NCBI GenBank assembly: GCA_009103225.1
Contig: RHPI01003642.1
Span: forward strand, 94,451 to 158,450
Length of the DNA: 64,000 nucleotides
From: Chlorokybus atmophyticus
Lineage: Eukaryota > Plantae > Mesostigma and Chlorokybus algae
Reading direction: 5' to 3'
The number at the start of each line of letters is the position of its first letter. Within the stretch, counting starts at the first letter, position 1. Positions 24,521-63,230 of this stretch are shown one piece after another. The notes below the pieces were generated by a model. It did no database searches, had not been told where the DNA came from, and saw only the letters and a list, made by a program, of their open reading frames with translations. Made by a program: the position numbers and the translations under genes.

Positions 24521-27500
24521 TCATGATGCCAAATCATGTTCTAGGCTACGCAACAGTCCTAAATACGATTCTTCCGGGAACTCACTTTCAATTGTTTGCG
24601 CGTATGCTCTCCACAGCTGCCGGTCACCTTGAAAGAGCTCCAAGAGCAACTGGTTGCGATGAAGCAGCGTTGCCAGCACAACAACCCACTCTGTACAGCC
24701 GACGGCACGCATGTGCGCAAGCAGCACCTCAGCATCGTGCCTCATCTCCGGCGAGTCCGGACCCAACTTGGACCTTACCGTCCTCAGCGCTGAAGGGAAG
24801 TCTTCCAGCCGGGCGGCGCGGCTGCGCTCTGCTGCCAGAAAAGCCGACAAGTCAAACTGCGTGCCTTTGGCAAACTGAACCAATTGCCGCAGATCATATC
24901 TGGTCAGCAGGCGGGTTGCATGGTCGCTCAATATGCGGCCCACTGTCGTATGCAGCACGTCCGCGCGTTTCTTCGGAGCGCTGGAGGTGAAGCCAAACTT
25001 AAAGAAGGTTGATATGATGCCATCTGCACTGTCGTCAACCTCCTTGTCGCTGGTGCTCACTTCACGTCCGGAGCGTATCAGGAATCGAACTAGCTCACCG
25101 GCCAAATCGTACAGGCCGCTGCCCAGCACTGCTTGGAGAAGGCGCAAGGCCGACTGTTGGCCAACAGTTGGTCCCTCCAGCTTCTCAATCACAAGAATAT
25201 AGCATGCGGCCGTGCGGTACTGCCCGTTGCTGATGCACTGCTCGAAGAGTGTTGTAGGCTTGCCTGCCGCCTGAAAGAGTAGCGCCCAGTGACGCTCATC
25301 TGTTTTGCGCGCGACACTCACAACGACATCAACGAAATCAGGGAAATGGCTGATAAGCTCAGCCGCTGCCACAAGCATGTTGTAACCGGGGTTCTTGTCG
25401 GGATTTGGGGAGGAAATGTACGGGCCAGTGGGACTGAGCAGGCCCTGAGCTTTTCGCCTGGCGCTGGCACTCGCAGTGGCCGCATCCAGCACCGTGAACA
25501 GCAGCCACTCCAGGGAATGTGAGAAATGCGGACGACTGGTGTTTGCTGAGGCCAAAACCAACGCCTCCTCATGGGCCTCAGTCTGGAGCAGGTGCCGTAG
25601 CAGACATGGTAGAATGGGCTGCGCTTTGGGGGTAGGCTCGAAACAGGGCATGTCTGTATTTGGGACCACGCATAGTCTCTGAGAGACCCCGACAATCACT
25701 CCAGCAGCTGTAGAAACGCCCAAAGGGTACACCTCGCGGTCAAACTCCAGCTCTGGATCTTGCTGGAACAGACTGTCGGAAGAGGACGTGTCGGGAGAGG
25801 ACGGGTACCACAGCTGCATGCCCCTGTGCCCGTACGCCCACCATGGCCTCTCTGCCGCTGATGCCTCTGGTTGCGACCGTCCAGCAGTCACCCAAAAATG
25901 CTCAACGCCAGTGAGTAGTTGGCGCTCCGTTCCCTGTCGGACACGCTCTAATGGGCATAGCCGGTAACAACTAACAGGACGTATGTGAACGACAAATGTC
26001 CATGATAACTTCAGGTATAACATTGCAAACTGTACCTGTGCTATATGGAGTAGCAATAGCTGCCCATCACTGCGCAGCACTATGCAGTGATCTGGTGCAG
26101 CGTCTCCCGCGTTCAATAGTTGTGACGATGCATCGGACTTGCCATAGTTTGCCACAAACATCACTGCCACTGGAGGCCGCTTGACAGATTGCAGGGAGAG
26201 CTCGCGCACAGCTGTCAATACTGCTCTAGGACTTCCCAAAGGAGTTAGCTCACCCTGCAATCAGTGCCTGGCATCAGCATACGCCCACAGATTGGTATTT
26301 TTATGGGACAATGTGATAGGTGCGTTAAACAACACGCACCTGAACAGCCACTTGGTATACAGTCAGAGCAAACGGACTCGTCACTGTTAGGATAAACTCC
26401 CCATGTGTGTCCATAGCCAAAGGCTGCGTGGGTAGAGGCTGCCGACATAGGAGGGAGGACTGGTCTAAATGGTAACGAGGATAAAGCAGCAGTTCAAACC
26501 TGTGAAGACATGTGGCATGGGTTAACTCCAAGCTTAGCCAAGCTGACATGCTGTGCACATGTGCAACGACAAACTATGCAATCATGCATAAGTAAATATG
26601 CAACTGCTATGAGAAGTAAGCGACGTACTTTTCCGCTTTCTGCGAGCAGACAACAATGGTGCGGTGATGCCACATAAGACCTGCACAGCGTATGGCCCGC
26701 TCCTGTGAGACGTCCCCAAACATGCGCCACTTCTTGGATCGCAAGTTGAACAAGATTAGTCCCTGACGCCCAGCCACAGCAATATCCGATCCATCTTCAC
26801 TCGAGGCAACATGAACAATCGGCCAGTTGAAGGATATGTACGACTGCGCACGACCACCAGGATAAGCACATCAACACTCCGCTGACCAAGCAACCCACGC
26901 AACCATTAGTAACGGCTTCAATCAGTAAACAAGGCACCTGCGGCACTACTAGGTGTTGGATGTGCAACTGCTGCGACGCATCATTTTGTATCAACATCAA
27001 CCGGTCTTCTGCCTGACAACCGCAAAATGAAAGTGTCAACACAACACGTGTGCATGTGTCCATGTGTGCGCGCGAGTATGCGCCGAAGGCTGCAATGCGC
27101 ACCTGCAACATCTCCCAAACTGCAGATGTGCGGGCGACAGAGCTGGTCATGCTGCCCTTTGCGAATGGAAACTGCAACAGTCGTGGAGCTGTTCCTAGCG
27201 ATAACTCGGCTGCCATCAGGTAGTAGCCTTCAGGTCCCCAGGCTGCTGTTGTGACCCCACCCTCCAAGGGCTCGCCATGTGTGCTTGAGGATGCACTTGT
27301 AAGGGGTGAGGCAGATACGCCGCTGCCACCCTATGGAAAGAAAGTTGACAAATTATCGTATATGAATGCAACCACAGCCCTGCTGCAATGATAAAGCCAG
27401 AAAATGACATGTTACCAAGTACAACTCAACAACATCTCACCTGACGAATCGTGCACATAAGCCGGCAGCCAGAGACTGACCACACACTCAATCCACGTAA

Positions 27501-32585: not shown

Positions 32586-33274
32586 TGCTGAATCTTCAAG
32601 CACTCAGTTCAAGGTGTTGCTTGACCATTCCTTGCAGATTGTGTTGCTCATAAGGCCACAAGGCCACCTCTGCAGTTGCATTCATGCCCAGGGCACAGTG
32701 ATTAGCACATCTGGCACAATATGGCATGGACACACTGCCTGCGCGATCATAATCTGCGTGAGTGAGCAGCAACATGTAAAGAGCACCGCACATGCTGAAC
32801 AGCACGGCGCAGCTAGTTTGGAGGGTTGAACAAGGATGCAGTTATGTAAAATGCATGTGTCCGTCGCCGTCGAAGTCTGTCAATAAGCTAGCTTCAACTC
32901 CTGGCAGGCATGGTTTTGCGAAGGGGAATGCTCTCAATGTCATGAAAGTGTTAAGCGTAAGCTACGTGCACAGCTCAAAACGCTGGCGGTGGAACTACTT
33001 AGGCATCATGCCCGAGTGCAGTTGTATAGGTCCTACGGCGCAAGTCAAGTTATTCACATAGCCAAGATGCGGTGCTTGCACACCATGTTCACAATGATGC
33101 TGAGTGCTGATTATGTACAAGGTCAACACCGCAATCGACTGTGCTTCATTAGTGCAGGCTTTACACTTATACACACATCTACGACCATAGGCTGTACACT
33201 AATCAACACCAAGGTGACCCCTTGCTGTACTGTAATGTCTCCAACAGTAACGTTCTTCACAACAGCATCACACC

Positions 33275-34919
33275 CTACATGGCCTCATCCGCCTCCAGAG
33301 TCGCCCCGAGGCTGTTGTTCTGCTGCATTCGCTCCAACACTCGGCGCTTCTCGTCATCCGGCAGCGCAGTGAACAAGAATATTGACTTGTCACCAATATC
33401 ATCCTGCAACAATCTGGCTGCATTAACACATCACTGCACTCGCTCATGAACGGCAACCCGTAACCTGATTGTCTCAGTACCTTGATGGCTTGTGTGAACT
33501 TGCGGGATGCAAAGACGCTGAACAGAGCAACCCAGCCGGCAAGCAATGGTGCCTCAAAAGACTGTGGCATGTGGACCTGTAAAAGAGCATTAAGCAACAT
33601 GCTGGCAGGTATGAATGCCGCCGAGCTGTCACAATGAACGTACAAGCAACCATTACCAGATGGCCTAGAAGAAGAGCCGGGATGGCCAAGAACAGCGCAA
33701 AGGCCTCGAGCTTGCCATAGCATACGCCTGCAGCACAACATCAATGCCCACGTCAGGAATGCTGCGCGCTGAGAAGAGTTTCCTACACTCCAATTGGAAG
33801 TCTTGAAGCACTCACCTTCTTTGAAAGCTATGCCGGTGAGTGCTGCAAACATCGGACCAACGAGCCAAACAGCCTCCGGATGATGAGCGATATGCTGCGT
33901 CAATGGCTCCGAGGCAGTTGAGCCAGCATAGATTGCACCAGCACATCCGACAAGCCACATCCCTTGCATGATTCTCTTCAGCTCACCCAAATACCTGACA
34001 CCCAAGGAAGACAAGAGACACATTGCACGCCATACAGCAACTGGAACAACACTGCTTGACAGGCAAACACATGATAGAACTGCAATTGAGTTAAGCTTAA
34101 ACGCTTACATATGCACCAGAACCAGCGATGTCCCGAGCCCAGCAGCACCGACCACCCAGGCTCCTTGTGACAGAGTTTGTAGCCAGCCAGCATCGGGAAG
34201 TGCGAGGGATGCTGCACCCGTGGTGATTGCTGGAATAACAAAAGTATGTCACCAATGCGCACAAGGCTGCATAAAATAGCAGCAACTACATGCTTCAGGT
34301 AATTGTCATAAGGGTCCGGCTCGCACGCTTACATGGGTGGTGAAGAAGTAAGGTGCTCTTGCAAAGTGTCCACGCATAATGCAGACGACAATGGAAGACC
34401 AAGAACACAAATGTGACGAGAATCGTGGAGTAAGCTACGTCGTGCACCGCACTCGCGCATATACTGGACAATACATATGAAGATGAACTCTAGAGGCATA
34501 CGCTGAGTGGCTCCAATGATGATGCTGTTGATAGGATAGGAACCGAGTGTTCAGTGGCTGTGCCTACTGTATGCCTTGTGTGAGGTAGCACCTGCCGCAG
34601 TGGCGACAATACCCGCCCGGTAGCCAAGAACCTCCTTGACGTCGTTCTCGTCCACTGTCCAGGGACCAAACCGCCCCTGGTACACCTCCGCAGCGCCGTC
34701 CTTTGCCAGCGAGCAGGAGGCTGTCCTGCCCCTGCCGCTCCTGCCCCTGCTGCTGCTGCTCCTCCACACCCCTCCCTGCCGCCTCAGCGACAACTCGACT
34801 GCAGCATTGGCCGGCGCTGCACCGCTTAGGGCACTACATCCCTCTGCAGCCCTCCTGCAGCGCGGTGACACCACGCAGCAAGCCCCCACAGCCGCCGCCG
34901 CTACCGCCGCCGCCGCCAT
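33275..34919 (-). CDS. DUF2301-family integral membrane protein with plastid-transit-like N-terminus
   Basis: VYQGRFGPWTVDENDVKEVLGYRAG, VGPMFAALTGIAFKEG and C-terminal DDIGDKSIF. Confidence 0.85.
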
Positions 34920-53038: not shown

Positions 53039-54623
53039 ATGGCGGCGGTCGTGGCGCATGTGGCGTTGCTGGCCGGGGACGGCTTGTGCATCAGCAAATC
53101 TGGGCTAGCGCAATGCAGAGTTGAGGGCCCCCCTCACCGACCTCGGCAGGAGCAGCAGAGGGCGTGGTCAGCCGCCGCCAGGCCTCTGCACGTGCGCGCG
53201 AAGAGCGGCAGGAGGCTGACAGCTTCTTCTCCTAGCCCAAGCGGTACACCTCACACCCTTTCTATCTACACCAGCATTGTCATGCAAGTGGCCACAACCA
53301 AGTTGCACAGCAGATGTTGCAGCGAGTTGTGGTAGATAATGTGTTGCATTCCATGCAAGAGACTGTTGAATGCGCCTTGCGTTGGCTGCAACCTTTCAGC
53401 CAATTGCACTTGCTTATAGCATGTTTATGCTTTGTTAGAGCGTCGGCCTTGTGCGGCCACCCTGTCCGAGGAACACGCGGATGCTTCTACCAGTGAGTCT
53501 GGGGTCAGGCATCAGGTGGTCGTCATTGACAATTACGACAGCTTTACCTACAACATCTGCCAGGTATGTTGCTGACATTGTGCTGTGGTTCGTTGTGTAG
53601 CCGTCAACTGCCAGGTCATAAGCAGCTTGGTTGCGTTATGGTGTACATGTTATCCAGCATGGTGTCCAAGGTGTTGCTGCGCGCAGTACCTCGGGGACTT
53701 GGGCTGCAATTATGAGGTGTATAGGAACGACCAGATTACCGTTGAAGAAATACGCAGGTAAGCAGCAGTTAAACGATGCTGCGAGCAGTGCACCCGCTGC
53801 GCAAAGTCTTCTCACCCCAGAGGCCCTGCTCAGGATGAATCCAGGTGGCATCCTCATATCGCCTGGCCCAGGTACTATCAGCCGGATTTGATACACCTCC
53901 TCATGTTACCTGTGTGATTTACAAGCAAGAAACAACAATAATCCATCAGTATGGTTGGATTAGGCCGGCCGGAGGACTCTGGCATTGCGTTGGAAGCCGT
54001 GGAGAAGCTAGGGCCAGAGTTTCCATTGTTTGGGGTTTGCATGGGCCATCAGTGCATTGGTCAAGTGTTTGGAGGTGCGTAGTCACATTGTTATTAATCT
54101 GGGTCACAGCTTAATAGCTTCATTGGCACTCTTTCTGCACAGGCCAGATTGTGCGCGCCCCAACTGGTCTGATGCATGGCAAAACTTCACCTGTGTTCCA
54201 CAACAATGTTGGCATTCTTGAAGGCATGCCCAGGTGCGTGACTGTTGGCATTGGCTGCCTGTGCAATTGAATATTCTCACACTAATGCATCTGTCATGTG
54301 ATGTTGGTGCAGCCCATTCACTGCAGCGAGGTATCACAGCCTGGTGATTGAGAATGAAACATTCCCTCACGATCAGCTGGAGATCACCGCGTGGACAGAA
54401 GACGGCACGGTCATGGGCGTTCGCCACAAAACTTACCCTCATGTTCAGGTGCAGCACTGCTCCGCCTCCTCTAGATCTTCTTGACGTACAGGTGAATTGA
54501 CACTTAATGCACATGTTACAGGGAGTGCAGTTTCACCCAGAGAGCATCATCACACAAGATGGGAAGACTTTGTTGAAGAACTTCATGCTGTCGCTCAAAA
54601 CCAAGCAGCGGGTACCAAGCTGA
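53039..54623 (+). CDS. trpG: Anthranilate synthase beta subunit (class I glutamine amidotransferase), plastid-targeted
   Basis: Transit-like N-terminus, [41 protein letters not shown] and GVQFHPESI. Confidence 0.93.
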
Positions 54624-55479: not shown

Positions 55480-58400
55480 TTAACAGTAGGTGAGAGGGCA
55501 CCCAGACTGCGCATAGTTTTGAGAGTTGAACTTTCTCATGACTGTGGTCACTGCACAAGAAAACACCACTTGTCAATTTCCAAACTAGCATGCATGCAAT
55601 GTGACCACCACACATCACACGACATTGATGACCAAGTCCACTTACGTTGAGTAACGTTGCCCCTACTGTACAAGGCGTGGCGGAAGTCCAGCTTAACCGA
55701 AAGGGGACACTAAGACAATCAACCAAGCGCTTAGTCGACACATGCATCAGCAATGCAATGCATCGCAATGCAAGAACAAAATGCAAGAGTTTTCTTGAAC
55801 AACACACCTGCGCGTAATACACCGTCTCCGCATTGAGCAGCGCTGCGGTGGCCTCCCTTGCTAAGGTGTCAATCTGTATTGTTGAAATGGTAATAAGCAG
55901 GACACGCATGGAAACAATGTGCAGGCACCTCCGGCATAAGCATTGGCAGTCACACACGCACATGCACACATAGGTAGGTTTGCGCACACGCATGCGTGCG
56001 CGCACATCACATCACATCACATCAACAACGCATTCGCACACATATCTACAAGGGCAAACATACCCGACGGGAGCCGGTTCTCAGAGATTGGCCGATGGTA
56101 CGGTTGCCAAAGAGGCGCTCAATGAGCTGCACATACACAAGCCACTCATGCATATGTAGCGTGTATACACGACGCTGGCAAGCACTAGCTTGAGCCTCAA
56201 TTTGAGAAAGTAACAACAAGCAACCATACCCGCGCATCTTCACTCGCACGGCTAGCGAATGCTTCAGAGAGCTTGGTGTACTGCTTGATATTGTTGGGAT
56301 AGTTGCATGCGAACCGATATGACCATGCATATACTGAACAACCCCGCTTTCCGCGCACTCTTCCTTCCGGAAACGCCTGCCTGTGGGTCACTCGACTCAG
56401 AGAGGCTGGTTTTGGTGTGAAGAGCGAACTTGTGCATGGTGCATCTCTACACACACACACTTACGTTGCGCATGATGGTGCGTTGTTAATCACTGTCACA
56501 TTAACACTGCGTGACACCTCAACGCCATCCTGTGAGAGGGTTACCGTGATGAGCTTGACTCCACTAGTGCCATACTGGCAGTAACCTGTCTTGTTGCCCT
56601 GTCACAAGCACCAGAGTTAGTCACTTCGTGAGGGGAGCTAGCTGCTGCAGCTGCATACCCGACCCAAGACACAACATGCACGAGTTGTTTGCTCACCACG
56701 TGATCCGGGCCACACTGTATGGTGAGGTCGAAAGGGAGGCAGTAAGTATTCGTGTACGACACGCTCACTAGAACAGCTTCTCCAACAGTTGGTCTTGCAT
56801 TGCCGCTATCTGGGACACCGCGCACGGAGTAAATCCTCGGGGGCGTTGTGCTGCCAATGACGGTGACGTTGGTGGTGAGAGTGATGGGGGTTGAGCCTGG
56901 GCAGGAGGAGTCGGGGTCGCTGCTGGCTCGCGCACTTAACGAGTACACCCCCGGACGGAGATGCAGTGTGCCCGCGTCAAAACGGGGTCTCGGCCCCGTC
57001 GCATCGTCAAAGTCACCATCGCTGTCAAAGTCCTAGGCCAGCGTGCGGGTATTACCGCATTCATCGACACCACCGGCAGCTGCCACGTAGATACTCCCGC
57101 AAAGGGACACTCTGTACAGCTCTCCGATGCTGCAAAGCCGAAAGGTGAGCAAAGACCTGTGTGACGACGACAACAACAACAACATGCATGTGTACTCGCG
57201 CTTACTAGTAGGTAGCAATGGTGATGTTTTTGGAGAGCGAGACGGAGACGTTGTTCTGCGTCAAGGTTGCGGTGATAACTTTCAGTCCAGGTGAATTGTA
57301 TCGGCAGATCGATGTCTTATTGCTCTGACCATACACACGGACAGACTGTCAGCACAACATCATGATTGCTCGGAGGTGTGGCATGCAGCAGCGATGATAG
57401 CGCTCGAGCTCAACTCACCACGTTGTCTGCGCCGCAATCAACAGTGACTGTGGAAGGAAAGCAGTACAAGGTTGACCTCGTGACTGAAACTTGGATGTCC
57501 TCGCCAGCGGTGGGGACGGGGTTGCCACTCCTGGGAGATGTGTTTATGCGAGTGATGGCGATCTTGGCACCCGCAATGACAGTCAAATTGACTGTGTACA
57601 CTTCAGTTGGAGAGGCAGGGCAGGGGGGGCTGCTGCTGGATTGCACACTCACTGGGTGGACACCGGGATAGAGACCGAACTTGCTGGGGAAAATGTAGGG
57701 CCTGCTCGCTGTGGAGTCGTCAAAGGCTCCGTCGTTGTCAAAGTCCCACGCAAGCACACGCTGTCTGCCACATGCGTCAACGGTGATGGGGGCTGCGAGG
57801 TAGACGTAGGAGCAGGGGGAGACGCGGTACGGCCCTCCCATGCTGCACGCACACGCACACGCACAACCGGTTGAGTGCACAGCCCCGGCAAAACAGCTTG
57901 TGTAACAACAAGTGCATCAATAACCGCACTCACTAGAAAGTCGTGACCGTGATGTTGCGTGAACGCGATGCAACAACGCCGAACTGCGAGATGGTGGTAG
58001 TGATGGTCTTCGTGCCGGACGTGCTGTATCGACACGTTTCCATCTCGTTACCCTGCCACAATGCCAGTGCGTGAGCACAACACCAATCAACAAGCTCACC
58101 AAACACCAACATGCGATGCAACACTGGCTGCAAGCGCGCATGCGCCACTCACCACGCTGTCTGGACCGCAGTCTAACACAAGGTTGTCCGGCACGCAGTA
58201 TGCTTTGGTGCTCTGCACACCCACCCTGATCCGCTCCGCCACACTTGCAACCGGGTTGCCGCTTTCTGGATACGTGTTTATGGCGCCGATGGCGGGCCGC
58301 ACGGTGGTGACGTTGACGGTGGTGCTCGCCACTTCGGGAGGAGAGTCTGGGCAGGAGCTGCTGGCGCGGACGCTTATCGTGTTGACTCCGAGACCGAGGC

Positions 58401-61400
58401 CCTGCGCGTACGCATTGAAGCTAGGATTGCGACCGGAAGCGTCGTCGAATAACCCGTCGTTGTCGAGGTCCCAAGCAAGGCTTCGCTCCTGGCCGCATGC
58501 ATCCGTGCTTGCGACGGCAGTCAGCCGGATGCTGGAACATATCTGCTCGCGGTACGGCCCTCCTATGCTGAAGAGACGAACACGAACAACAACATCTCAA
58601 CTCATGCACGCGCTGTGCATGCGTGCGTGCGTGCGTGTGCGCTTGCATGCATGATGACGCCGTGCTGCTCACATGAATGGCAAAACCGTGACGTTGATGC
58701 TTCGAGACACAACGATACCAAACTGCTCCAGCGTCACCGTAATCACTTTAACTCCAGTGCTGTTGTACCGACAGACGGCGGTCCCACTATAGGCCTGTTA
58801 TTGCAGAAGAGTGCAGCACAATCAGGCACGCGCGCACGCACGTGCGCACACACGCACATGGTATAGAACACGGCAAGCAAGGTATACCGCAAGTGTAGTA
58901 TATCATAACAACTGCGTACCTCCGCTACATTGTCCGGGCCGCAGCTGATGGTCTGGGTGTAGGGCAGGCAACGCTGCAAGAATGTTTGCGCAGAGATGCG
59001 GATGCTCTCGCCTATGGTCGCGTTGGGACTGCCGCTAAGCGTGGATGCACGCAAGCTGGAGATGACCGGCGGTACGGCCGTGACATTGAGCGTGGTACTG
59101 CGCACTTCAGGAGGAGACGCTGGGCAGGAGGGGCTGCTGCTGGCTTGAATACTTAGCGTGTGCACGCCGGGGGGCAGGCGCTGGTCATTATTGATCACAG
59201 CGTAGGGTCCGGAGGCGTCATCGAATTCGCCGTCGTTATCATAGTCCCATCGCAACACCCTCTGCTTGCCGCAAGCATCAACGCCCACACCCGCGGTCAA
59301 TTGCAAGTAGTCGCATGCTCGCATTTCAAAGGGCTCGGCCAATCTGTCGGTCAGTACTTGTTGTTATTGCTCATGGTCATGGTTGTTTGGTTGTGGACGT
59401 GAAGCGGTCATGCATGAAGGCGCGTGTGCGCGCGCATGTGTGTGCCAGCAGCAGAAACACTTACGATATGGTCTTGACTGTGACGACGATTTCCTCGGAT
59501 GCCACAAAGCCATCTTGCTCCAATGTGACTGTAATATGCTTGTCCCCGGTGGTGTTGTATTGACAGGCACCTTTTTGCCTCGACTGCGATTCGCACGGAG
59601 GCACCTCATGCGTAAATGCTTGCACGCCATGGCAGCATGCATGCAGCGTGCACATTTGGCTAGCACGAGCCACAACAAAGCAGCTGCTCTCTCACCATAT
59701 TGTCCGGACCACAGTTGATGGTCAGGTTGTGGGGCCTGCAGCTTGCAATGACAATGTCCGCAGTGGGTCTGAATAGCTCACCAACATAAGCTTCGTTGTT
59801 CACGGAGCCGGCATTGGCAGTTCGCGTGCGTGCTTGCACGCGTCGTATGAGAGGGACTGCACTGCCCGTGACCGTGACAGTAGTGCTGAGCACCACGGGG
59901 TCATCGGGACCCGGGCAGGTGGAGGGGCTGCTGGCTCGAGCGCTGATCGTGTACACGCCCGGCCGCAGATTGGCCGCCCTGAACGTTGGTCTCCCCCCAA
60001 CGGCATTGTCAAACACGCCGTCGTTGTCAAAGTCCCAGGCGAGGGTGCGTGGCTGACCGCACGCGTCCCCACCATATGCTCGCAGCTGGATGTTGCTGCA
60101 CACAGCCACGGTGTACGGGCCTCCCGCGCTGCGCTCGGCAAAACAAACAGCAGACATGCGTCAACACTGAGCTGAGCACAGAAGAGTCACATGCAGTGTT
60201 ACCAATATTGGTGTTGAACATGCAAGCGGCTTACTATGCAATGGCTCCGATCGTTTGGTTCGCCGTTAGTCCGAAGCACCACTTGCCGGGCTGCAGTGGA
60301 AGGACAACAGGTAAGTGACTGCCAAGCCTCTCTTGAGTACACATGTTGACACACGCGTGCCTCAGGAGGCACGTCTTCACGCGTGCATGCACGCGTGAAT
60401 GCATGCGTGCATGTGTATGCCTAAGCGGTTGCATGCATCATGCCGCCTGCGGCAGGCTGCTTGCTTAGGATGCAGACGGTATCTGGTAGTTGTGCCCACC
60501 TGCCCAATGTTGGAACTCTCTCTGGTTGCATTGCCGGCCGCCGCGGTCAGCGCGCTGGGCAGGCTGTAGCTGCGGACCCCATCCCCAACATTGAATCCCG
60601 CTTGCGCTGTACGCCAAAGCACATCAACACAAACCCCTCATGGTCAAATTGTGCACACACCATGTGCAAAAGGGCAAAGTGCAGTCGGAGGGGGGCACTT
60701 ACCCTTGTAATACAAGTTGGTAGTCTGGGGCCTGTCATTGGCGTACAGCAAGAAGATAAAGGTAGTGTCGGTGTTGAAAGCGATGACTATCTGGAACGTT
60801 TCGGCTGCAAGTTTCGCTGTGCAACACGTAGCGGTCTGAGCACAAAAGGGGTGTCAATACATGAACATGTGGACAGCGCGTGTCACATACATCAGACCTC
60901 TCCGCACATGCATGCAGAGGGGCACACACATTGTTCCAGGTGGCAATGACGGCTGATGTTGCACTGAAGCCGGCTGCGAGTTGTTCCGCGGGAAACGCTT
61001 CACGAGTGTCATCGCTGATACCGGCAAGAATGGCTGCGTCGTTGATCGTGCGGTATGTCGTCTGGCCACAGTTTCGGCACAAGTTGTAGAGCTGTGTCCA
61101 GAAGCCTGCCACCATGCTCAGGTTGGGATCTTGCGCCGGAAATTCCCTTGGTAAACCTCCGTAGCTCCGTCGGAAGTGGATTCCGCCATTGCTGTTGATG
61201 TACACCCCTCGCACGCTCGGTACTCCAAATACAGGCACCGCAGCTGGCAGGCGAACTAGGTTGGAAGCACACGCGTAGCACCTGCTCGCCACACAGACGA
61301 GAGTCAGTTGGGAGCTCCGTGTCATTTGCAAAGCACTACGCACGTTATGAACACCTCCTCATGCATGCACCATCATGGGCAGGCACGGCAGAGGACTGTG

Positions 61401-61647
61401 TCTTTCACTCATTGCAGTCGGCTACATGACACAGACGACAATCAAAGCAAGTGTTGTGTCGATTCGCCGTCCCACACAGGCAATAGATAAATGGCGTGGC
61501 AGTCAAATGCACGTTCAGGCAAGCCAGTGCATACGTTCTCATTGTTGTGTCGCCGCTGGCAGCGCCGAAGGGGTAGAGCTCCTGTACGGTAAGGGCGGAG
61601 GCGCCGACAGCCAGCAGCGCCAGAGACAGCATCCATGCCGCCGCCAT
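55480..61647 (-). CDS. Large secreted protein: signal peptide + NIDO domain + 5 tandem double-Ig/PKD-like repeats with WDxDxDG loops + C-terminal LAREATAALLNA...GCPL domain; in-frame TAG at 57033-57035
   Basis: Signal peptide MAAAWMLSLALLAVGASA and LYPFG..GD. NIDO-like motifs YINSNG, VAGFWT, VIATW, NTFQIVI and AQAGFNVGDG..YSLP..SSNIG..GKW. Five colinear repeats with conserved intron positions. The last exons can be spliced in frame to a stop at 55480. Confidence 0.82.
56460..60135 (-). repeat. Five tandem two-exon coding repeat units (about 0.75-0.9 kb each)
   Basis: Each unit is a large exon (GGPY..C..D.CG..R.L.WDxDxDG.FD..C.P..TTV.VT..SG..GE..C.P..CG.D.V) plus a small exon (C.Y.T.G.K.ITVTL.Q.G..V.V). 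Loops are WDFDNDG, WDYDNDG, WDLDNDG, WDFDNDG and *DFDSDG. Confidence 0.9.
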
Positions 61648-63230
61648 TGCCACCGGTGGCGAAGAAGAAAACGCAGCTTGACCCATTCTCAGAACCTGTC
61701 AAGCAGTCAAAGAAGAAGAGTTGAAACTGAGATCTTGTTGAAAGGAGCAAACTGGCGAGCGGAAGAACAGCAGCGAAGAGACAGATATGCATGCATGCAA
61801 AGGCTCTCACTCGCACGCACGCATGCAGCACACAGGGGCAGCAGGTGACGCGGCAGCAGCGAGCAATGCAGCACACAGAGAGCCAAGCACCTGAGCATAC
61901 TCACCTGGCCGAAAGCGGGCTCGGCGGCGGCGGCGGCAAGCAAGTGCCGCTACTCTAAGCCCAGACGCAACTTATCCTTGTCTTATACCCATGTGCTGAC
62001 TCCTATTCGTTTGCGGCGGCAGCGCACGCACCAGCGAGCTTGCCCTAGAAAAGCCGAGGAAGAGTCCAAGAACGCACCAAGAGAGCGCACGCCTGCTGGA
62101 TAACATCCTCGGTACCAGGCTGCTACGATCTGCACGTGTAAGTACAGTTCTTTGCACACGCTTCAACTTGGGTCTAGTGGCATCTAGCCACGTGCTGGTA
62201 CGGGCTGTCATCGTATTAGTCTGCTATGGAGGGAAGCGGGATGCCCTACCTGAAGTAGGCTACCGCATGACCTTACGAGCTTCCGTATTCGAGTTGAACG
62301 TCACCCAAGCTGAGATGCTCTCTGCAGCGAAATGCAGAGTGGTGCGGCCCCGGGTGCCCCCTGCTTGTTCGTCACGCGAATTTTGTCTGACCTTATGGCT
62401 GAAATTGAAATCACAGCATAACCTCTCTGTTACAAACCGCTGACCAAGAGATCTCGCCTTGTAAGAAACGTTTTAATGTGAACATATCAAACAAAAGCTG
62501 TCCACTCCAAGATCAAGAGACCCCGCAGCAGGACCTCAACATCATCGATTTTTTCTTACACGAAGGGTGCGGTATAAAATGCATTAACGTATGCATGTTT
62601 TGAAAGTTATATATTACTGGACGTAAGTAAGTGTCTTACAAATATTATGTGCCGGACAGCATGACATAGCATTAAACATTATACACGGCGTGATGTTTGT
62701 GACGTAACCTCGACCTAAGAGTTCGATCTTTGACGTCGAGGAAATAGACACGTTTTATGAGATAAAATGTAGGAGGATGTGTCTTCTATTCGAACACACG
62801 CTTCTGTGAGATGAAGTTATACTAAATGGTCAGGTGACACAGCTGCTTGCTGGGCGTGGCAAAGCTTTCGTGCATAGGGTAGCGAAACGAGGGAACAGCC
62901 GACATAGGAAAAAATTGATGAAACTGGATGTTTGCTCATGCTCTACGTTGAAAGTTCCAAACATGTAGCAAAGGGCGGTTACTGAAGCCAGCTTCGGCTG
63001 CGACAAATACTATTGCGATAGAGCTGACGACTTCATTGACGGAATTTAAGCTGACCCACTCGACCAAGTCCTTATAGGTGCTGCACGTTATCTACGTACA
63101 CTGTATAATGCAGCATGTGGTACATGCTGCGCTAGAATGTAGCAGCAATTGTTGCAACAACCTACAAAAACCTACATGTTACTGGTTGAGCACTACCGTA
63201 TTTCGTCCCCCCCCCCCCCGTTTATTATGC

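Follow-up and report, generated by a model that had tools for sequence, protein, structure and literature searches.

The region analysed here is a 64,000-nucleotide stretch of the genome of the streptophyte alga Chlorokybus atmophyticus (GenBank assembly GCA_009103225.1, contig RHPI01003642.1, positions 94,451 to 158,450), hereafter the window, in whose coordinates all positions are given. On its minus strand, from 61686 to 55480, lies a gene of 20 exons that corresponds to the public model jgi/Chlat1/5076 Chrsp33S05072. It is a genuine transcribed and spliced nuclear gene of Chlorokybus, and we read its product, with a probability of about 0.72, as a secreted modular protein composed of a signal peptide, a NIDO domain, five tandem units each made of a pair of PKD-fold modules, and a C-terminal domain. 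The parts are known; the combination, the cysteine-bearing two-module unit and the genus-restricted family to which the gene belongs are new. The copy in the window is interrupted by an in-frame TAG in its fifth unit.

The exon model was built from joints in RNA contigs, from contig pieces and from the window DNA, the RNA evidence being spliced contigs over the locus from four public runs (X1 to X4) of two studies. All 20 exons are bounded by GT-AG and sum to 3957 nt, with 19 introns of 76-253 nt each; the reading frame opens with an ATG at 61686, contains an alternative ATG at 61647 and closes with a TAA at 55482-55480. Six of the 19 introns (55710-55807, 55874-56063, 56381-56464, 56599-56696, 57325-57418 and 57843-57933) were seen directly as contig joints, with CT..AC ends on the plus strand that correspond to GT..AG on the gene strand, and the junction between exons 1 and 2 is backed by the loose end of an X2 contig at 61281. 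An exon-by-exon comparison showed that the public protein P0001 (1349 amino acids; EukProt Chlorokybus atmophyticus P004528, also jgi/Chlat1/5076/Chrsp33S05072) contains each exon translation in order, and whole-protein analyses were based on this entry and on paralogs retrieved by our searches. An earlier interpretation made from the DNA letters only (the sequence-only reading) had proposed a gene of about 20 exons and had asked for its expression; both now stand on spliced RNA. Pieces from X1 and X3 are identical to the window, including an X1 contig that spans exon 2 (60930-61281) at 100%, and pieces from X2 and X4 are about 88-91% alike and derive from sibling lineages or paralogs. Over exon A4 (57419-57745), run X1 yielded two contigs, one identical to the window (depth 58) and one with 32 differences in 327 bases (depth 8.5), implying that a paralog of about 90% identity or a second lineage is expressed in the same sample. 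Loose contig ends at 55667 had suggested a missing downstream exon; this candidate was rejected, as pattern searches of the window were empty, and comparison with the paralog P0004 showed that the contigs concerned are paralogs diverging at that point, the real donor being at 55646.

Exon 1 (61686-61535) supplies the start codon, the signal peptide and the first NIDO residues. It reads MGQAAFSSSPPVAMAAAWMLSLALLAVGASA followed by LTVQ, and the first NIDO residues, LYPFGAASGDTT, are encoded at its end. By inspection, the putative signal peptide runs from MGQ to AVGASA, immediately before LTVQ, and possesses a hydrophobic core and a small-x-small site (AVGASA before L); the MG[QR] start and the core are kept in the paralogs P0002, P0003, P0004 and P0152. 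The signal peptide that the sequence-only reading had proposed is present in exon 1, but the start that it had chosen, 61647, is the second ATG, the first being at 61686. The NIDO domain is encoded by exons 2 to 5 (61281-60930, 60835-60703, 60606-60500 and 60290-60235), placed with Pfam and an X1 contig. Pfam PF06119 matched the raw open reading frame of exon 2 at E 5.7e-13 and, exon by exon, exon 2 at E 2.7e-12 (47.5 bits) and exon 3 at E 1.2e-3. Residues 120-298 of P0001 match the profile over positions 3-183 of its 186 positions, at 96.1 bits (cutoff 25) and E 3.5e-27. With the gathering cutoff exceeded, NIDO membership is genuine, and the "NIDO-like" label of the earlier interpretation can be dropped in favor of NIDO proper. 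The protein ends in GCPLTYC, without a hydrophobic tail, and shows secretory-type features, namely 24 N-x-S/T sequons and 42 cysteines. Its sequence suggests that the product is probably a large modular glycoprotein that is secreted, disulfide bonded and N-glycosylated.

Each of the five units that follow is encoded by a large A exon and a small B exon. The units were located with a hidden Markov model (HMM) of the unit, unit 1 comprising A1 (60128-59696, with an X1 piece at 59696-60128) and B1 (59583-59465), and unit 2 comprising A2 (59343-58920, with an X1 piece at 58919-59343) and B2 (58794-58673). Unit 3 consists of A3 (58567-58153) and B3 (58052-57934), covered by X4 pieces at 58152-58567 and 57934-58051; unit 4 of A4 (57842-57419) and B4 (57324-57206), with RNA joints at 57842/57934 and 57324/57419; and unit 5 of A5 (57129-56697), which contains the TAG, and B5 (56598-56465), with RNA joints on both sides of B5. 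The five A exons align at 38-50% identity with invariant cysteines and an acidic loop, the B exons align likewise, and each unit holds six conserved cysteines, so that the tandem array with regular cysteines and loop is as had been described from the letters. Run over all six frames of the 64-kb window, the unit HMM recovered the five units at E 1e-54 to 1e-63, with 6e-36 for the unit split by the stop, and found no match beyond these five and no tandem paralog.

The fold of the unit was approached by modelling. Unit 4, taken from residues 855-1035 of P0001 and folded with AlphaFold from 19 aligned units, gave two beta-sandwiches with a predicted local distance difference test (pLDDT) score of 94.5. 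The first module superposes on the PKD-like domain of ColH (4u6t) with Z 9.8 and a root mean square deviation (rmsd) of 2.1 over 79 of 86 residues, and the second on the PKD domains 2c26 (Z 9.4) and 1l0q (Z 8.8). By predicted structure, each unit is thus a pair of PKD-fold modules, which makes ten in the whole protein. The Ig/PKD-like character proposed earlier is upheld at the level of predicted structure and falls below the Pfam PKD cutoffs at the level of sequence profiles. We built a profile from the five A exons and compared it with 1.84 billion representative proteins; of its 2351 matches, P0001, a public entry without a functional name, ranked first. The non-Chlorokybus matches that we examined (nine by Pfam and ten by source) were mostly PKD_4-rich bacterial or metagenomic arrays and otherwise surface-type proteins with PPC/He_PIG. 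In P0005 (E 2e-93), the best-matching stretch, 923-1028, overlaps a PKD_4 domain at 916-1009; P0007, P0052, P0148 and P0020 are also PKD_4-rich, the overlap having been checked in P0005 alone. BLASTP revealed that the signature GGPY...AWDLDNDGQYDDATG is common to the units and the PKD_4 arrays at 35-41% identity, in keeping with the bacterial-type motif GGPY...WDxDNDG.FDDA.G singled out by the sequence-only reading. In a sequence search of the PDB, the unit profile had no match and a bacterial PKD_4 domain used as query returned nothing useful.

The acidic loop sits in the first module of each unit. Of 32 units examined in 11 gene models, about 30 have its pattern, W-D-x-[DN]-x-[DN]-G-x-[FY]-[DN]-D-A, and the individual positions are conserved in 29 (D1), 29 (D/N3), 31 (D/N5), 31 (G6) and 30 (D/N10) of the 32. 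Weak Pfam matches to TSP_3 and GEVED fall on this loop, which fits the established DxDxDG type of Ca2+ site and would be expected to bind Ca2+.

The C-terminal domain is encoded by exons C1 to C5 (56380-56230, 56126-56064, 55873-55808, 55709-55646 and 55550-55480; RNA joints and P0001). It comprises about 135 amino acids with conserved cysteines and the motif EATAALLNAET, and is common to P0004, P0151, P0152 and P0066. Searched exon by exon and whole, it had no match in our copy of Pfam (which does not include PF27764); a word-index protein search found no match either, and two scans of bacterial and archaeal genomes found no relative. The domain announced in the sequence-only reading is present, its helical nature being suggested at low confidence by an AlphaFold model from three sequences (pLDDT 46). 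A feature search of the Atlas with the C-terminal domains of two paralogs retrieved the same four clusters each time, three of bacterial hypothetical proteins (0.80-0.89) and one of the plant Protodermal factor 1 C-terminal domain (PF27764; 0.78 and 0.81), the latter being the only one to carry a Pfam family among the Atlas matches listed. All four lie below 0.9, the threshold above which an Atlas score counts as more than a lead. The likeness to the C-terminal domain of the land-plant proteins PROTODERMAL FACTOR 1 and FOCL1 (PF27764, PDF1_C) is a lead given by these scores, and we propose tentatively, with the odds leaning against it, that the algal domain is a counterpart of the PDF1/FOCL1 domain. 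If this were true, a module of the plant epidermis and stomatal cuticular ledge would go back to the terminal domain of giant NIDO-PKD matrix glycoproteins that the earliest streptophytes possessed. The packet matrix of the alga would then be linked to plant surface biology, in a mosaic of an animal-type matrix domain and bacterial-type repeats.

Several points tell against the interpretation given above. The signal peptide was assessed by eye only, and P0001 carries an N-terminal extension of 43 residues (MLSSRRALSW..., window 61687-62140) that the reads do not allow us to exclude; the extension is not conserved in the paralogs, whose conserved start is MG[QR]. The units do not reach the Pfam PKD cutoffs (PF00801 and PF18911, PKD_4): exon A1 scored 13.8 bits for PKD against a cutoff of 23.5, P0001 had no Pfam PKD match at E ≤0.01, P0002 scored 23.2 bits for PKD_4 against a cutoff of 27, and PKD_4 appeared at E <1 in only 2 of 19 units, with a best value of 0.0029. 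Because the units fall below these thresholds, the Pfam annotation recorded for P0001 is limited to NIDO and a weak GEVED match. A sequence search of the PDB yielded no solved structure that has such a loop, and Ca2+ binding is predicted from the motif. A role in matrix or adhesion is likewise inferred from motif and architecture. Lastly, owing to the TAG, a full-length product is possibly not made from this locus.

This TAG (codon 1024, 57035-57033), which adds to the earlier description of unit 5, stands at the Trp of the WDxDxDG loop. Each of the 19 aligned paralogous units has Trp at this position, and so do the position-5 units of P0004, P0066, P0151 and P0152 among them; TAG is one base away from TGG. 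Termination at codon 1024 would leave a product with NIDO and four units but only 31 residues of unit 5, and without the C-terminal domain. The public model avoids the stop by splicing out a 36-nt GT..AG stretch (57068-57033), which drops VDECGNTRTLA and the stop, so that P0001 reads ...AAAGG directly joined to DFDSDG. Such an intron is implausible, since the accepted introns measure 76-253 nt, the shortest being more than twice as long, and since a contig of a sibling lineage (X4 record 19) is unspliced across 56696-57129; it is probably an annotation artefact that hides the stop. Reassignment of the stop codon was considered and rejected, as the 1318 codons contain a single TAG, located exactly at a Trp codon from which it differs by one base, and the terminal stop is TAA. 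A protein search for exon A5 fragments derived from contigs found no match, and the identical X1 contig begins at 57013. Unit 5 starts with IGELY (57117-57128), and the other aligned units with GGPY or a close variant.

We conclude that the copy is either a truncated variant, a very young pseudogene or the victim of a base-call error. That the change from TGG to TAG is real and has produced a young pseudogene or truncated allele, the function being carried by intact paralogs such as Chrsp31S04848, is a competing reading, and we rate its chances at somewhat under one-half. The stop replaces a residue invariant in the aligned units, five-unit paralogs with an intact frame exist, and the public model keeps its frame only through the implausible 36-nt intron; in addition, the Pro of GGPY, invariant in 19 of 19 units, is changed to Leu in unit 5. 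Against this, all family-invariant residues of unit 5 and of the C-terminal domain downstream of the TAG are intact, unit 5 has an unremarkable branch length (0.42 versus 0.33-0.40 in its closest relatives), transcription and splicing continue downstream of the stop, and a single-base assembly error is possible. P0152 (Chrsp31S04848, 1355 amino acids) has an identical full architecture.

At least 13 paralogous gene models were found, all in Chlorokybus. They include Chrsp31 S04786, S04846, S04848 and S04899, Chrsp124, Chrsp279, two models on Chrsp29, two adjacent single-unit models on Chrsp120, and Chrsp153; four family members cluster on scaffold Chrsp31. Domain content varies, P0002 being devoid of NIDO and P0004 having three units and the C-terminal domain. 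A maximum-likelihood tree of 31 units sorts those of different paralogs according to position (u1 to u5), at 97-100% support. The adjacent models on Chrsp120, P0025 (Chrsp120S01796) and P0047 (Chrsp120S01795), contain units of the u3 and u4 types in this tree and look like one multi-unit gene split by annotation. The intron pattern is uniform: each A exon is entered with two codon bases from the previous exon, each B exon starts on a codon boundary, and the latter intron splits the second module. The positional grouping of the units and the repeated exon layout together imply that the five-unit array, introns included, predates the expansion of the family. A two-exon unit was thus duplicated in tandem within the algal genome to give the array, and this took place before the paralogs separated.

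The family resembles known proteins part by part. In alpha-tectorin, a PF06119 NIDO domain likewise comes right after the signal peptide of a large secreted multidomain glycoprotein, and, outside Chlorokybus, the nearest long NIDO relatives that we found are those alpha-tectorins that come from fish (29-30% identity, E 2.5e-11). Compared with the animal NIDO proteins (alpha-tectorin, nidogen, SNED1 and mucin-4), the algal protein has pairs of PKD-fold modules and its C-terminal domain instead of vWD, ZP, EGF or FN3, and its host is a streptophyte alga. The bacterial PKD_4 surface proteins, such as the FG-GAP/PKD protein MFK7919643.1 of an Ilumatobacter metagenome-assembled genome (MAG) and the metagenomic P0005 and P0007, have GGPY...(A/T)WDxDNDGxYDDATG in common with the first module, which aligns to PKD_4, but they lack the six conserved cysteines, the alternating two-module unit, NIDO, the C-terminal domain and introns. 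A profile search did not find the combination of NIDO and PKD pairs outside Chlorokybus, consistent with the earlier suggestion that the architecture is not widespread, and our literature search found no paper on an algal NIDO-PKD protein or on this Chlorokybus family. The claim that the system is undescribed holds in these respects and in the lack of a functional name; it does not hold for the gene model, which is public, nor for NIDO in streptophyte algae, which has been noted in Zygnema and reported absent from land plants (PMC11096116).

Where the modules came from is a separate question. An ancient horizontal transfer of the PKD-pair units, and perhaps of NIDO, from bacteria, followed by the gain of introns, cysteine pairs and tandem duplications, is in our view unlikely, if well short of negligible. 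All ten of the top non-Chlorokybus matches whose source was looked up are genome or metagenome records of NCBI, ENA or IMG, among them one Ilumatobacter MAG protein, three on contigs of 3.9-7.4 Mb and one locus with a bacterial-style gene context; the GGPY...WDxDNDGxYDDATG signature is common to these matches and the algal units, and no other eukaryote occurred among the strong matches examined. However, bacteria dominate the database, so that bacterial top matches are expected from sampling alone, and the comparison is one of search matches. Moreover, the nearest long relatives of the NIDO domain are animal, the GC content of the gene is similar to that of its neighbors, and its introns are many and conserved in position.

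Chlorokybus lives as packets of cells in a common matrix. Our current working hypothesis is that the ten PKD-fold modules would form an extended extracellular rod, in which the first-module loop of each unit would bind Ca2+, as its motif suggests, and whose opposite ends, NIDO and the C-terminal domain, would mediate interaction or anchoring. On this view, the wall or mucilage that holds the cell packets together would contain the proteins of the family as structural or adhesive components. From motif and architecture, we would put such a matrix or adhesion role at even odds. A green-algal extracellular filament protein built of tandem Ig-like modules is already known, the mastigoneme protein Mst1 of Chlamydomonas (9b4h, 8wa2). 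The two-module unit superposes on it as a pair with Z 7.5-7.8 over about 160 residues (rmsd 5.5), a Z common among unrelated beta-sandwich tandems, and Mst1 has neither NIDO nor a common sequence signature.

The family could instead recognize glycans or microbes, as lectin-like, wall-polysaccharide-binding or defence proteins whose expansion reflects an arms race, which we consider rather improbable. PKD-type modules of bacterial glycoside hydrolases and collagenases act in binding, and the algal modules find their best structural matches in accessory PKD domains that bind substrate in ColH/ColG and in a cellulosomal enzyme. The PKD-like domains of the Clostridium histolyticum collagenases ColH and ColG (4u6t, 4jgu, 4tn9), together with 2c26 and 1l0q, have the same fold as the algal modules (Z 8.8-9.8, rmsd 2.0-2.6 over 78-80 residues) at only 11-20% sequence identity, and a similar fold does not establish function. 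The collagenase PKD-like domains are stabilised by Ca2+, at a site that differs from the WDxDxDG loop. An arms race would also agree with a family that is expanded, genus-restricted and variable in domain content, some paralogs being without NIDO, some of the units or the C-terminal domain. On the other hand, Pfam revealed no catalytic or known lectin domain, and the units hold strict positional orthology without shuffling. A structural or adhesive role keeps our preference.

Of the lineage that leads to land plants, Chlorokybus and Mesostigma represent the earliest branch, and, to our knowledge, the matrix proteins of Chlorokybus are essentially unknown. Elsewhere, NIDO typifies the matrix proteins of animals. 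A genus-restricted and expressed NIDO-PKD family provides concrete candidates for the algal matrix and is a clear example of widely shared parts being put together independently into an extracellular architecture. The conserved cysteines, acidic loop and introns of the unit make direct tests simple. There is also a lesson for annotation, in that Pfam-based pipelines detect only NIDO in such proteins and the public model masks the stop with what is probably a false intron.

Bacterial contamination, or a misassembled bacterial surface-protein gene, has only the bacterial-type PKD signature in its favor and is rejected as hardly conceivable in view of the 19 GT-AG introns, six of which appear as joints in the spliced RNA, of the eukaryotic neighbors on the same contig and of the paralogs, at least 13 gene models, that this alga has on other scaffolds. 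The neighbors are ordinary eukaryotic genes. Directly downstream of the NIDO gene, on the opposite strand, lies the terminal exon of a class-I glutamine amidotransferase (54507-54623, plus strand), with a GVQFHPESI motif and a Pfam GATase match at E 1.6e-6. Farther away on the minus strand are a DUF2301 membrane-protein exon (33268-34023) and a long exon of a RIC1 homologue (24521-26260), in which the C-terminal region of RIC1 is matched at E 2.9e-45.

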